Source of the DNA: Adineta vaga
Taxonomy: Eukaryota > Animalia > Rotifera
Assembly: GCA_021613535.1 (NCBI GenBank)
Contig: CP075494.1
Location: 7,378,001-7,442,000 of the forward strand
Length of the DNA stretch: 64,000 nucleotides
Reading direction: 5' to 3'
Position numbers and translations under genes: made by a program. Positions 55,415 to 62,942 of this stretch are shown one piece after another. The notes beneath the pieces were generated by a model. It saw only the letters and a program-made list of their open reading frames with translations. It was not told the DNA's origin and made no database searches. Position 1 is the stretch's first letter, and each line of letters opens with the position of its first letter.

Positions 55415-56613
55415 ATGACTAGTGAAGCAAGTACTCCAGCTTCGGCTACAATGAATGACGATAAATTATCAGATCAATTGATTATTAAAGCTCAATTAGG
55501 TGATGATATCCGTAAAATGATGATCCATAATGAAGATTTAACATTGAATGGTAAAGATTCATATACACAGGATTAACGTAAGAGAAAGAATTCTTTGTTT
55601 TGTTTAGAACTTGTTTTAATGATGGAGCGCATCTTTACTGGTAAAATATCGAATTCAGATGAATTAACAATCAAATATTTAGATGATGATGGAGATAAAG
55701 TTACTCTTTTGAATGATAGTGATTTGACTGTAGCTTTAAATTTTCATAAAGTACTTCGTTTATTTGTAAATGTCAATGGTACTGAACAAAACAAGATAAA
55801 TTCAGCGAAAGATTCAAATCAGAGTGGAGATTTTATTGATGAAAAAACATTTCGTAGTGAATTACAATCAATTCGTAATTCAGTACAAACAATTCTTGAT
55901 CGTCTTCAATTATCAACAAATGATGTGTTAGATGCTAAAATAACAACACATGAAATTGAGCCACACAAACAATCATCTGCTGCAGCAGAGACTTCTCAAT
56001 TAAACACAAATCATTTTGCTAACCATGAACCTTATACAGGTAAATTAAAAATTTTCTCTTCAATAATCAAATTGAACTTTTTTCCAAATTAGTCAATGCA
56101 ACACAAGTACAACCAACTGATACGAATAAAATTCCTCAAACACAAGTGCCAACTTCCCATTTTGTACCAACAGCATTCAAAAATGAACAAGATGCAAGAA
56201 CAAATACATTTGGTCCTCCACCCACAACTTTTCCTAATGTGCCACCTTTACCCAATAGTACAGTGCCAAGATTTCCTCCTGCATCAAATCCAACCAGTAA
56301 TGCACCGCCAACGAACTATTCACCCAATATGCCACCAACGCCAGCCAATGGTCAACAACCAGCAGCTGTATCTCCTCCTCTACCTCCACAACAAGGTGGA
56401 TTTTATGGTCACCAACAAAATTTATATCAACAAAGACCATCATATCCAAACTATCCGATAAATAATGTATATCCTCCACAGCAACCAACAACAAACAATG
56501 TATCATTTCCTCATTCTTCACCTCCACCACAAACAGCTGCTCAACAGTCATATGGAGCTTATCCTGCGCAAACTTCCTACTACAATCCTGGTCAACAGTA
56601 TCCTCAATCATAA
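55415..56613 (+). CDS. TFG: Protein TFG (PB1, coiled coil, P/Q-rich tail), exons 55415-55550, 55608-56039 and 56093-56613
   Basis: LIIKAQLGDDIR...IHNEDLT..ELVLMM.RIF.GK...DELTIKY.D.DGD.VT...SDL, then RSELQSIRNSVQTILDRL and a Pro/Gln/Tyr-rich C-terminus. Confidence 0.95.
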
Positions 56614-57151
56614 TAGTTCTTTTTTTAAATCTTTATCCTTCTACTCTGATTACTTTGCATGATATTATCCGTTTGTTGTGACGTGTAATGTTTAGTTTGA
56701 AAATAATGGGTATTGCTATGTTTTTTTTAAAATATGAACAAACAAATAAATACGAATGAGCAATGTTTAACTTTCCTGATACTGATTAGATAACGGATGA
56801 TAATGTGGAATGATATAAAAATATGATGAAGAACAAATAACTTCTTACTTACTAAAGGAAAACTTTCGATTACGTTTATCTTTCTGTCGTTGTCAAAGAA
56901 TACACACGAAATTTGTGTTCTGTAATGAAGTTACGTGTATCGTACTACTCGTTATATTTCTTTTTCCTTTCTTTTTCTTTTTCTTCTTTTTTCTTTCATT
57001 CTGTGTCGTACATTAAACCAACGCACATTCGCATACACATACATAGACACCCTTTCTCTTAAGAACGAACAGAGTGGGTCAAAGTACAACGATTCGAAGA
57101 GAAACTTCAACTGCAAACATTTCTATTTCCATTTGATCGTTGAATTCAATC

Positions 57152-60100
57152 ATGGCCGAGGCACATGAAGCTGTTGCATTTTCATTTACAGTTGGTCCTG
57201 AAGGTACATTTTAGATAAATAAATATATAGATATAGATATATTAACATTCTTTATTTATTTTTATTCTTTCGTTTTATGTAGGATTCAATGTTGATGTAA
57301 GTTATGACGTTTTTAAAGCACTTCTCTATGCTGCTTTACGTTCATGGAAACTTCGTTGTCGTCGAACATTAAATTCTCTTTATAATACATTATATCCTGG
57401 TCATCCACTTCGTGGTATTGCTTGTTGTGGAATTATATCAACTCTGTATTTTAAAGGTTATGATCCATCATTTAACTCAATCGATTGGTTAGATGAACAT
57501 ATTTTTCGACGTTATCTTGCACCAAAAAATTCTAAAATTATTGCTTGTATTACATTCGGTGCTGGTGTTTATATTGTTCTTATACAAGTTCGACAATATA
57601 CATTAAAAAAACTATTTTCCTATCATGGATGGATGTATCAAGAACATGGCAAAGAGTTTGGCTTAGTGCCAAAAGTTTGGATGGGTTTAGTTAAACTATG
57701 TATTGGTCGTAATCCATCATTATATTCATGTCAACATCTTTTACCAACATTACCATTACCAAGTTTAGATGATACATTACGTCGTTATTTAAGATCAGTT
57801 CGACCACTGTATGATGATACGGAATATCAACGTATGGAAAAATTAGCGGAAGAATTTAAGCAAACAATTGCTAAAAAATTACAAAGATATTTATGGCTTA
57901 AATGGCTTATTTCATCAAATTATGTAAAGGATAATTTGAATGTATATATGTACATTTGATTATTTAGGTTTCTGATTGGTGGGAGAAATTTATTTATTTA
58001 CGTGGCCGATCAGCGATTATGGTTAATAGTAATTTCTATGGTCTTGTATGTATTCAATCGATTAATAGACCGAATTTAAACTAGTTTCGTTTTTTCCAGG
58101 ATGTACTCTACGTTCGACCAACCACTATTCAAACAGCACGAGCAGCAAATTTAACATGTGCAGCTTTTCGATATCGTACCGAACTTGATCATGAAAATAT
58201 TAAACCTGTATGTAATTCTTTATAATAATAATAATAATATCGAGTTTTGTTTTTGTTATATACGTATCTATCGTAGTTAATGGTACAAAAATTAATACCA
58301 TTATGTTCAAGTCAATATGAAAGACAATTTAATACTGTACGCATACCTGGCAAAGAAACAGGTTATTTGTTTTTTTTTCCAATCGATGAATGAATATTTC
58401 TATGATGAATTTTCTTTAGACCGCATTGTTCACTACTCAGATAGTCGTCATATTGTCGTTTATAATAAAGGTCGTTGGTATAAAGTATTCATGTTTTATA
58501 AAGATAATCTTCTGGAACCATCTGAGCTTCAACTGTACGTTAATTGAATCGATAGATATGATCATTTTGTTTTGTATATTAGTCAATTAGATGAAATTAT
58601 TCGGGATACTACACCACCTGATAATGGTGAAGAACATTTAGGTGCTTTAACAGCTGGTGAACGAACAGCTTGGGCAGAAGCTCGTGAAACTTATTTTCGT
58701 TCTGGTATCAATCGTTCTTCATTGGAAGCAATTGAAAAATCAGCATTCGTACTTATTTTGGATGATGAAGATTTTGAAATTGGAACCGTAAGTTAATCAT
58801 CTTATCTCATCTTTTTTCCTTTAATTCTGAAATTCAATGTACAAAATTTTCCTTGAATCAGCATGATAAAAATGCACCGACATCAGTGAACGATCAAGGG
58901 GTAATTCATATCAATATCTAATTCGTTTTATAGCTAAATATTACACTAATGTCTTCTGTCTAATGGTGGTTTGTTAGTATCTAACAAATAATACGTTTTT
59001 TTAAAAAGATTTTAGTATATAAAATGAATAATATTCTTGATATTTTTAGAATATGACTGGAAAATTCGATGCGTACGCTCATGCAATTCTTCATGGTAAA
59101 GGATACGATCGATGGTTTGATAAATCATTTACTTTTATCGTTAGCAAAAATGGTGTGGTATGTGAGAGAAAAGAAAAGAATGTGAGAAATGTTCTATTGT
59201 CAATCATGTTCGCTTTTTATTTTAGTTTGGTTTTAATGTCGAACATAGTTGGGTAAAACAAATGAAAGTTTTAAATATTTGTAGATTGTGTTGATTTTCA
59301 TTTAGGCCGATGCTCCTATTTCTGGTCACATGGTAGAATATGTCCTTTCAGAAGATGTTATGTTTTATGGGTAAGTTGAATATGTAGACATAATTACTAA
59401 CGATGACTGTTGTGTCATTTTTAGTTATGATGAACTTGGTAATACACGTGGTGCACCTCGTTTTACTGCACTGAAACCAATTAAACTTAGATGGAATGTT
59501 TCGGAAAATGTAAAAATAATAGATTGAATTCTATTTAAATACTATTCAATCTAATTTTTAGTGTCATATTTTGATCGAAAAAAGTCTTGCTCAAGCAAAG
59601 AAAATCTATAATGATGTTGATCTTCATGTTTATGTTCAAGATGCATATGGCAAAGGTTTTATGAAGAAATGCAAACTTTCACCCGATGCTTATATTCAAA
59701 TGGCACTTCAATTAGCTCATTATCGTGTACGTTATTTCTATGGTTAAATATTTTTATGATTATTCTTTTTTTCACGTAATTTAGGATTCCGGTCATTTTA
59801 ATTTAACATATGAAGCATCAATGACTCGACTCTTTCGTGATGGTCGTACTGAAACTGTTCGTTCATGTTCAATTGAATCAAGTCAATGGGTAAAAGCAAT
59901 GGAAGATCCAACTGTTACTGTAAGAAAAATCAACTATTCTGCATTGAATTCGTTTGTATATAATTCATTTTTAGAAAGCTGAACGTATCAAGTTACTTCG
60001 CTTAGCTTGTGATTATCATCAACAACAGTATCGTGATGCAATGACAGGCAACGGCATTGATCGACATTTATTTTGTTTATATGTTGTAGCAAAATTTCTT

Positions 60101-61210
60101 GGTCTTGATTCACCATTTCTTCAACAAGTTCTTCAAGAACCATGGAAATTATCGACAAGTCAGGTAAGTGAAAAATCTTCTTATTAAAAGAGAATAATCT
60201 TGAGATAAAGATAATTTTTTTGAATTAAATATCTAAATCTATATAAGACCCAGACCATGTATGATGATAAGCGTTTATCAAAATTGATTGCTCAAAAACC
60301 AGAGATGGCTGAAAAAATTGGTTGGTCAAAATTTAAAGGCGTCGTAGGAGCTGGCGGCGGTTTCGGACCTGTGAGAAGAATAGACTATTTTTCACTAACC
60401 CTTTCTTGATTTTTGATCTTGTTATAACTGCATGGTTGCACTTTCTCTTTTGTTTTTTTTCACATATCTAACAGACACCTGCTTCTTATGAAGAACGCTA
60501 TACTAATGATGAGCGAGCAAAGAAAGCAATTATGGTTGGTGGTGGTTTCGGACCTGTGAGTTTTTATATTTCTCGCTGAAACACATCGATCGTTTGTGAT
60601 TATCTAGTTGATTTAATTTTGTTTAGTTGAATCTTTTCATATCGTACAATAGAAATTTCTTACAGTCATGCCAAGGGGACAACATTTAGTTTCTAGAGTA
60701 GACACAATGATTACATTTCCTAGGCTTTCTCAAGAAAATACTTCTCAATCTTGACTAATATTAAAGAAACTATTTTTTGCATGAATCACTCTTGCATATC
60801 ACTGCTTCAGTTTGTTATAAATAATTGCTTATTTTATTTTTGCATGTTATTGCTTGCTATTAATTTCATTCATGAGAAATAATATTATTTTTTACAAGGA
60901 ACATTTTCTTTTTATAGGTGGCTACTGATGGTTACGGAGTTAGTTATATCATAGCTTCGGAAGATCTTACCTTTTTCCATATTTCATCGAACAAATCTTC
61001 ATCTGAAACCGTAAGAATTTCAATGAATTTGTCTAAAGATCAGTTTTTTTTCTTATTGTATGGTAGGATTCAAAACGATTTGGTGAACGCATTCATCAAG
61101 CTATGGCAGACATGCGAGATTTATTAGCTGATGAAATAAGTACGACTAGTGCAAGAAAAACGTCAACGAAATTGCCAACAGTTGCACCAACAACTGATTC
61201 ATCCGCATAA
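57152..61210 (+). CDS. CPT1: Carnitine O-palmitoyltransferase 1, multi-exon with alternative exons
   Basis: [65 protein letters not shown] (catalytic His), [49 protein letters not shown]. Confidence 0.97.
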
Positions 61211-61479: not shown

Positions 61480-62942
61480 TTACAATTTAGACGGTAATTG
61501 TTTATCAGTAATATTGATCGCGTTAAGATAGGAAGAAAGTAAACGTGTTGCATCAACAGCAGTACCCCACGAAAGTGAAATACCATTGCCACCATGACCG
61601 TAGTTATGAACGACCTGAAAGAATATGATATATTTGAAAATAAAAGCAACAGTTTTTGTTTTACTAAAAGCTGTTTGTTTTCATGTTTTATTGTTTCTGT
61701 TTCTACACGAATTGGTTCTCGATTTGGTCGAAGTCCAGCCTACAATCACAATATATTACGATAGGAAATATTGATTAATTTAACTTACCCAATGCCAAAG
61801 AATTTCTGCTTTCTAATGGAAAATAAAAGATTAAGTTCATTTGTAATTGAATATATATTCAATCTAACTCACTTCTAAACTGGGACATAATCGAAGACAA
61901 CGTTGCCAAATACCATCTTTGTCGTTCAAATCAACTTGTGCATTATCATTATCGAATTGACGTGTACCACCTAGTACAATTGTATCATAACTAGAAATAA
62001 AATTCGAAAAACATTCTTTATTTGTTAATTAAATTACTTCGGAATCATATAACAATTATCATCTGTATAATAGAAATGTTTAATCCATGGTGCTCGAACA
62101 CGTATCATTTGTCCACGTATGGGATGCATGAGATCATCATGACATAATTCTTTCGCTCCAAAACCAGTACAATTCACGACAATATCATAACTATCAGCTA
62201 ACTAAAGAAGAAAAAAACAAGTTTATAAATGAAACAGCAAGAAATTTTCCTACTTCTTCTAACGATTGAATCTTCTTTTGAATAAATGTTACCTGTTTTT
62301 CCATTAATCTAAACAGATTGGAATTTTAATTCAATCATTAACGTAGTTCTAAAACATACAATTTCGTTAGATATTTCATATATTTACGTGTATCAATATA
62401 CACAGTCGTTGCGAAATATCCATATCTTAAAATAAGAATCGTTTTTTCAACTTTTGTATTTCTCTTGGAAAAAAAAACGTTCATAGTTACTTGTAATGAT
62501 CAGGAAATATGGCTAATTCGTTTTTAGTTAAATAACGAAAATTATAGATTATATCTTGATAAGATGGATCTGGACGTGGATCATTGAATAATTGATAACC
62601 AGATACTTGAGAAATACCAGCATCAGCAGCAATATTGGAAAAAATGATATTATTGAAATGATCGAATGATGTTTGACACCATTTTCTTTAATTTTTTCGA
62701 AAAAGAATACAATCATCGTAAATGAAATAGTTCAACATTTCGAAATACCTTAGAGTTGATGGATCAACACCGACAATAAATCGTTGATCTGGTCGAAAAA
62801 GACCGCCAGCACCATCGCTAGTTGTATCTTCAAGAAAACGATCAGCAATAACTGTTATAGATAATGATGGATGTTGTGTTCTGATACATAGAGCAGTTGA
62901 TAAACCAACCACTCCGGCTCCAATTACAGCTACACGAGTCAT
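61480..62942 (-). CDS. DDO: D-aspartate/D-amino-acid oxidase, peroxisomal (C-terminal SKL), multi-exon
   Basis: [50 protein letters not shown] (DDO-type), [19 protein letters not shown]. Ends LPSKL*. Confidence 0.9.

Follow-up and report, generated by a model that had tools for sequence, protein, structure and literature searches.

CPT1 governs fatty-acid entry into mitochondria and sets the rate of mitochondrial fatty-acid oxidation, and variation in its kinetics is relevant to the physiology of fasting and stress. The enzyme has a specific insertion between the STS motif and GGGFGP, to which, to our knowledge, no role has been assigned so far. In the window analyzed here, a stretch of 64,000 nucleotides of the Adineta vaga genome (C5:7378001-7442000; the assembly searched comprised 100.8 Mb in six pieces), a CPT1 gene carries two small neighboring exons, A and B, either of which could encode this loop. 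The locus therefore raises the question of whether the two are used as alternatives to each other, and of where such an arrangement came from. From the comparison of bdelloid loci presented below we favor, with a probability of roughly 0.55, the reading that A and B are regulated mutually exclusive exons with A as the default.

The CPT1 gene and its two loop exons

The gene was identified by searches run exon by exon or with database proteins. Four exons matched the Pfam family PF00755 (Carn_acyltransf) above the cut-off, at profile positions 1-51, 275-299, 411-453 and 456-520, and a fifth, at positions 534-561, scored 21 bits, slightly below the cut-off of 22.3. Additionally, exon 2 (57285-57923) used as a query gave 808 matches, with full-length proteins that contain CPT1-type STSQ..GGGFGP loops. 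In the orthologous loci of other bdelloids Carn_acyltransf ORFs were also found, and PF16484 (CPT_N) was called in L007-L014. The parts of the gene that matter here are the following, in positions of the window:

57152 to 61210, + strand: CPT1 gene, C5 copy, from the ATG at 57152 to the stop at 61208-61210, as supported by PF00755 matches, CPT1 representatives and orthologous loci
59306 to 59370, + strand: exon for the segment after the catalytic His, single, matching the insect alternative exon pair
59975 to 60163, + strand: constitutive upstream exon of 63 codons (Pfam 456-520), whose 3' end is the STS motif plus Q, followed by GTAAGT
60164 to 60247, + strand: intron 5' of exon A, 84 nt
60248 to 60370, + strand: exon A, 41 codons, phase 0, with AAG before and GTGAGA after it; the bdelloid-typical long loop
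60371 to 60474, + strand: A-B intron, 104 nt, with CTAAC-type motifs starting at 60395 and 60468
60429 to 60434, + strand: UGCAUG hexamer, 46 nt 5' of exon B
60475 to 60555, + strand: exon B, 27 codons, phase 0, with CAG before and GTGAGT after it; the short loop
60556 to 60917, + strand: intron 3' of exon B, 362 nt
60778 to 60783, + strand: UGCAUG hexamer 3' of exon B
60841 to 60846, + strand: second downstream UGCAUG hexamer, 3' of exon B
60918 to 61010, + strand: constitutive downstream exon (Pfam 534-561), which begins with the strand after GGGFGP in all relatives

The catalytic His motif EHSW lies immediately 5' of 59306, and STSQ ends at 60163. Exons A and B are each a multiple of three in length, have AG/GT borders and an open frame, and terminate in GGGFGP. 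A repeat search returned their common 3' end as a 24-nt direct repeat that is 92 % identical, with the final 17 nt identical. Exon B is preceded by a strong pyrimidine tract and a CTAACAG acceptor, and the intron that follows it is 362 nt long, versus 44-79 nt for three other measured introns of the C5 gene. The earlier note on this DNA had described two phase-0 exons of 41 and 27 amino acids after STSQ with identical 3' ends, and the translations, borders and terminal 17 nt bear this out. Its statement that CPT1 has a single GGGFGP also stands, because all full-length CPT1 representatives matching the motif pattern have one such motif per protein. Furthermore, since the flanking exons map to positions 456-520 and 534-561 of the 574 in the Pfam profile, the family has one slot for A and B, and A alone or B alone leaves exactly one GGGFGP in C5 CPT1.

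Judged by phase, borders and the shared end, A and B are adjacent homologous exons for the same protein segment, as would result from tandem exon duplication. Such a duplication would have produced two versions of the loop that runs from the carnitine-binding STS motif to GGGFGP. The GGGFGP stretch lines the acyl pocket, and the two enzyme forms, which the gene can probably make, would differ beside both substrate sites and possibly in their kinetics.

The surroundings of the gene were also compared. A DAO-type (FAD oxidoreductase) gene, in tail-to-tail orientation to CPT1, was read by eye at 61500-62000 on the - strand, and Pfam DAO ORFs flank CPT1 in the loci of a metagenomic bdelloid (lineage X, below), Rotaria sp. 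Silwood1 and Rotaria socialis; this common neighbor supports the orthology of the CPT1 genes. On the 5' side, a gene with a Pro/Gln-rich tail occupies 55500-56615, and an ORF at the equivalent place of a related metagenome contig gives a weak PB1 match.

Conservation of the pair and decay of exon B

The pair, with A of 41 codons and B of 27, open and with intact splice sites, was also found in lineage X (L007-L012), lineage Y (L013-L017) and Rotaria sp. Silwood1 (L026). Lineages X and Y are bdelloids from metagenomes (one lineage Y contig, L018, ends 5' of exon A), and the contigs that carry the pair are syntenic or clearly orthologous with the window. The recurrence of an open pair of equal length in three other bdelloid lineages puts it beyond chance. 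The introns around A and B vary in length across lineages and mostly do not align; 3' of B, the intron lengths outside the window's lineage are 111 nt, 156 nt and 1284 nt. Among lineages, the codons for GGGFGP in B show only synonymous differences, and when neutral substitution was simulated at the observed divergence, B remained open with GGGFGP retained in 0.6-1.4 % of runs per lineage. At the nucleotide level B is 73-78 % conserved between lineages, compared with 64-74 % for A. Exon B has no third-position excess, and its dN/dS between lineages, calculated on very few sites, is about 0.5-1.7. Low divergence without third-position bias is a common pattern in alternative exons, and by itself the divergence pattern of B does not prove protein-level selection on its middle part. 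Apart from GGGFGP, B is best conserved over its first few residues, which are like the starts of A-type exons adjoining STSQ, and this fits B being joined directly to STSQ.

Two copies of B have decayed. The homologue in Rotaria socialis (L027:3488-3567) is 80 nt long and frameshifted, with a broken motif. The second relic belongs to the other CPT1 gene of the A. vaga genome, on C2, which is the ohnologue of the C5 gene. It consists of 71 nt (L002:1141-1211 on the - strand, which is C2:12241904-12241974) in the intron after the A-type exon, and has lost its acceptor and its motif and acquired an in-frame stop; aligned to the B exons, it beats all 300 shuffles for four of the five queries. Copy type (C5 or C2) was assigned by the downstream DAO gene and diagnostic residues, a tree of the 63-residue upstream exon having given no resolution. 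Because a decayed B lies in the C2 copy, the A/B pair predates the C5/C2 ohnologue split, and the distribution of intact pairs and relics places it before the split of Adineta-like and Rotaria lineages as well. The pair would have arisen in the bdelloid stem and been kept in the C5-type gene, with B decaying twice independently, in the C2-type gene and in Rotaria socialis. Having been lost twice, B is dispensable. Four lineages keep both exons, however, and this retention, set against the two decayed copies, points to long-term constraint on A as well as on B. The intron that follows the 41-codon exon in a further bdelloid (L006:1736-1972) is at least 237 nt long and has an acceptor-like site, CACTAACAG, about 75 nt in, with no open B exon; it may represent a third decayed B.

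Transcripts were searched with the upstream exon, an exon alignment and the spliced contig L023. No C5-type transcript was among the matches listed in these word searches, and the matches listed in the protein searches were genomic ORFs, C2-type transcripts and Rotaria gene models only. In addition, a junction-pattern scan of the JGI contigs returned one C2-type bdelloid transcript and no C5-type one. Among the gene models, which are predictions, that of Rotaria socialis at NCBI uses A alone, and three from Rotaria sp. Silwood1 (L026:5179-5515; P0281, P0399 and P0401) join A to B and contain two GGGFGP motifs. We know of no RNA support for these A+B models, and the joining is probably an annotation error arising from in-frame tandem exons.

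The models bear on the possibility that B is a cassette exon, or that A and B are both constitutive, in which case transcripts would carry A alone or A then B, and the joined form would have a 68-residue loop with the second GGGFGP as the working one. The two exons are in frame together, the intron between them is long enough for splicing and the three Silwood1 models do join them, but the Rotaria socialis model has A alone and, the Silwood1 models excepted, no screened CPT1 protein has two GGGFGP motifs. Moreover, an exon B that always followed A would not be expected to conserve its STSQ-proximal start, and we regard this reading as unlikely. With mutually exclusive use, which we prefer, each mRNA would most likely take one of the two exons and leave out the other.

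A slimmer chance is given to B being out of use in the window's species, as an intact relic heading for decay. The two independent losses, a dN/dS near 1 (on few sites) and the lack of any transcript with B among the protein matches listed and the JGI contigs scanned would all agree with this. Nevertheless, the B of the window keeps its frame, both splice sites, its motif and UGCAUG both upstream and downstream, the motif codons have changed only synonymously between lineages, and B is intact in three other lineages, another family included, all of which speaks against a relic.

The long loop and the comparison with insect CPT1

The C2 copy of CPT1 has a single 41-codon exon of type A, and exons of this length and type are also present in L004, L006, P0168 and P0164, fragments of many environmental bdelloids being of the same type. 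Three spliced JGI contigs (L023 = P0278, P0279 and P0403), all C2-type, run from STSQ through one 41-residue loop into the downstream strand; because they carry this loop alone, it is a working form in mature mRNA. One of these C2-type transcript contigs opens with an unspliced intron end (L023:1-111) and is seemingly a partly processed pre-mRNA. In L022 (- strand) and P0168, the C2-type gene has lost the intron after STSQ and has one of about 54 nt behind the loop exon, hence there is no trace of B.

The loops of CPT1 representatives are mostly of 25-35 residues (one has 47) and almost always begin x-Pro-x-x-Gln. A single loop of about 26 residues is present in ORFs from arthropods, vertebrates and other animals, as well as in L031, a nearer relative outside the bdelloids. 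Exons of type A retain the core seen in ordinary animal loops, which resembles Lys-x-Pro-Glu, and add an insertion, and exon B starts like A-type exons and is without the middle 14 residues. In both bdelloid exons Tyr replaces the near-invariant Gln at loop position 5. On this comparison, the 41-residue A loop is the norm of the lineage and B a derived short form. The earlier note had correctly observed that A lacks the Pro of SQTP and is longer by 14 amino acids, but its suggestion that A gives an unusual isoform has to be turned around, the 41-residue loop being the bdelloid norm; the replacement of this Pro by Gln is confined to the window's lineage, and TP is kept in the A exons of other C5-type loci. 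Exon A would thus supply the bdelloid-standard 41-residue loop and is probably the default choice, and B would supply a 27-residue loop without the middle part.

Regarding structure, AlphaFold predicts three short helices, with moderate confidence, for the 41-residue loop of the Rotaria socialis orthologue. Relative to CrAT, about 28 residues are inserted, and these make up the entire loop stretch. A PDB search with the Rotaria orthologue returned, as relatives of its catalytic domain, only CrAT, CrOT, ChAT and CPT2, with CPT1 itself not among them.

Alternative exons in CPT1 are known from insects. At the CPT1 locus of the beetle Rhamnusium bicolor, a tandem pair of homologous exons, 66 and 63 nt long (L028:4310-4375 and L028:4526-4588), comes after the EHSW exon and encodes two versions of the approximately 21 residues that follow the catalytic His (EHSW, then ADA..), and the STSQ-to-GGGFGP stretch lies within one uninterrupted exon (L028:6054-6401). 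The abstract of Price et al. 2010 reportedly describes a region of 21 residues across all insects, and together with the beetle locus this would place the fly exons 6A and 6B after the catalytic His. The earlier note had assigned them to the STS-GGGFGP region, which is contradicted by the beetle gene, where the pair follows the catalytic His and the loop is uninterrupted. The alternative pairs of the beetle and of the window encode different segments. We found no second copy of the corresponding window exon (59306-59370), which is single and has flanking introns too short to conceal one. The beetle gene model P0384 wrongly includes both alternative exons in tandem, the kind of error suspected in the Rotaria sp. 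Silwood1 models, and it is also divergent in the TYEA..GRTET region.

Since the segment differs and the window's counterpart of the insect exons is single, the bdelloid pair is independent of the insect one, a separate invention within CPT1 that concerns a different element of the active site. Between the two origins suggested earlier, an ancient protostome switch and convergence, the one loop of about 26 residues in other animals and in L031 argues against the first, and the position of the insect pair at another segment agrees with the second. In Drosophila, CPT1 (whd) uses exon 6A or 6B, the two forms differing in activity, and the choice is regulated by nutrition and SR proteins and shifted by starvation, 9G8 and PKA (PMC10879661). 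Homology of A/B with this switch, as an ancient protostome splicing module, is barely credible, for although both groups have tandem alternative exons in CPT1 and the fly switch and its nutritional regulation are documented (PMC10879661), the alternative exons of the beetle cover another segment, which lies about 210 residues upstream, arthropods encode the STSQ-GGGFGP loop within one larger exon, a single loop is present in the nearer non-bdelloid L031, and both bdelloid exons carry lineage-specific features such as Tyr for Gln at loop position 5.

Splicing signals and known systems

The introns around B contain a possible basis for regulation. TGCATG occurs 28 times in the entire window on both strands, against 27.9 expected, which is chance level, and three sense-strand copies are found within the 466 nt of intron flanking B. 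In five of five loci the B-flanking introns hold two to six sense-strand TGCATG per locus, versus 0-2 in the rest of the locus, and one UGCAUG is located at -46 to -74 from B in each of the four lineages whose B is intact; none was found 5' of the decayed B in Rotaria socialis. The C2 copy retains one TGCATG, 48 nt past its A-type exon, despite its dead B. UGCAUG is the element of Rbfox proteins in C. elegans (see below), and a motif-pattern search of the genome returned two Rbfox-type genes, at C1:3912900-3912929 (L029) and C4:9958900-9958929 (L030), the best PDB matches of the RNP2 exon being RBFOX1/2 and C. elegans ASD-1 (E about 1e-7). These two genes, known from the first RRM exon alone, are possibly ohnologues. 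Pfam Fox-1_C gave no match in the own genome, where the control was equally silent.

Choice of B is probably regulated through these conserved intronic UGCAUG elements, which an Rbfox-type protein would read; because they flank B on both sides, the direction of an Rbfox effect cannot be predicted. The full scenario, in which an Rbfox-steered exclusive loop switch has been kept in bdelloids since before the genome duplication, with the C2-type gene fixed on the long loop and the C5-type gene switching, is put forward tentatively, at somewhat less than even odds.

The splice sites were compared as well. The donor of exon A is weak, GTGAGA across five lineages (GTGAGG in Rotaria socialis), and the acceptor of exon B is CTAACAG in four lineages and CTGACAG in one. 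A branch-like motif, followed by a long pyrimidine tract, is present 27-40 nt past the A donor, far from the B acceptor, in four of the five lineages, and is absent in Rotaria sp. Silwood1. This motif and the CTAAC acceptor recall steric exclusion or a site for a STAR protein, possibilities to which we attach little weight. The C5 gene has a 44-nt intron at 57924-57967, an indication of how short a spliceable bdelloid intron can be that bears on steric exclusion. Steric exclusion is given little weight because C5 CPT1 also splices this intron, and in its simple form it is not evident, since the A-B intron (104 nt) exceeds the working 44-nt one.

Other means of enforcing exclusive use were considered. 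Incompatibility between U12 and U2 sites was ruled out, all sites being U2-type GT-AG, and nonsense-mediated decay was ruled out as an enforcer because double inclusion or double skipping stays in frame. As for docking/selector RNA pairing, the window contains two complements of the upstream donor region, but other lineages conserve nothing comparable beyond A-rich/T-rich pairing, and it was dropped as evidence.

Two natural versions of the loop in one gene, conserved for very long, offer a direct handle on its role, and the bdelloid pair, if mutually exclusive as we propose, would be a natural experiment on this CPT1-specific element. Exon-level isoform switching in CPT1 would then have arisen at least twice, in insects and in bdelloids, and the enzyme would have gained isoform diversity through exon swapping repeatedly and independently. 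The C5 and C2 genes would also provide an example of ohnologues dividing an ancestral splicing switch, and the pair flags public gene models that wrongly contain both exons.

Several known systems resemble the one proposed here. In C. elegans, exons 5A and 5B of egl-15 form a mutually exclusive pair steered by UGCAUG through ASD-1 and FOX-1, of the Rbfox family, and exons 9 and 10 of let-2 one steered by CUAAC through ASD-2, of the STAR family. As in these genes, UGCAUG and CTAAC motifs are conserved around the bdelloid exon B, and Rbfox genes are encoded; unlike in egl-15 and let-2, the bdelloid elements lie on both sides of B and are candidates predicted from sequence. In alpha-tropomyosin, exons 2 and 3 are kept apart by steric exclusion via a branch point close to the upstream donor. 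The branch-like motif 27-40 nt past the A donor in four of five bdelloid lineages is reminiscent of this arrangement, but it is missing in Rotaria sp. Silwood1 and, with a 44-nt intron spliced in C5 CPT1, a distance of 27-40 nt may not be prohibitive. The insect 6A/6B exons are, like bdelloid A and B, small tandem homologous exons for an active-site-proximal segment of CPT1, but theirs is the segment after the catalytic His instead of the STS-to-GGGFGP loop, with a separate origin. Lastly, vertebrates obtain kinetic diversity by whole-gene duplication, as CPT1A, CPT1B and CPT1C. Vertebrates and bdelloids both diversify CPT1 within one organism, and bdelloids, unlike vertebrates, would do so by both routes, with the ohnologues on C5 and C2 and, in one of them, the exon pair.
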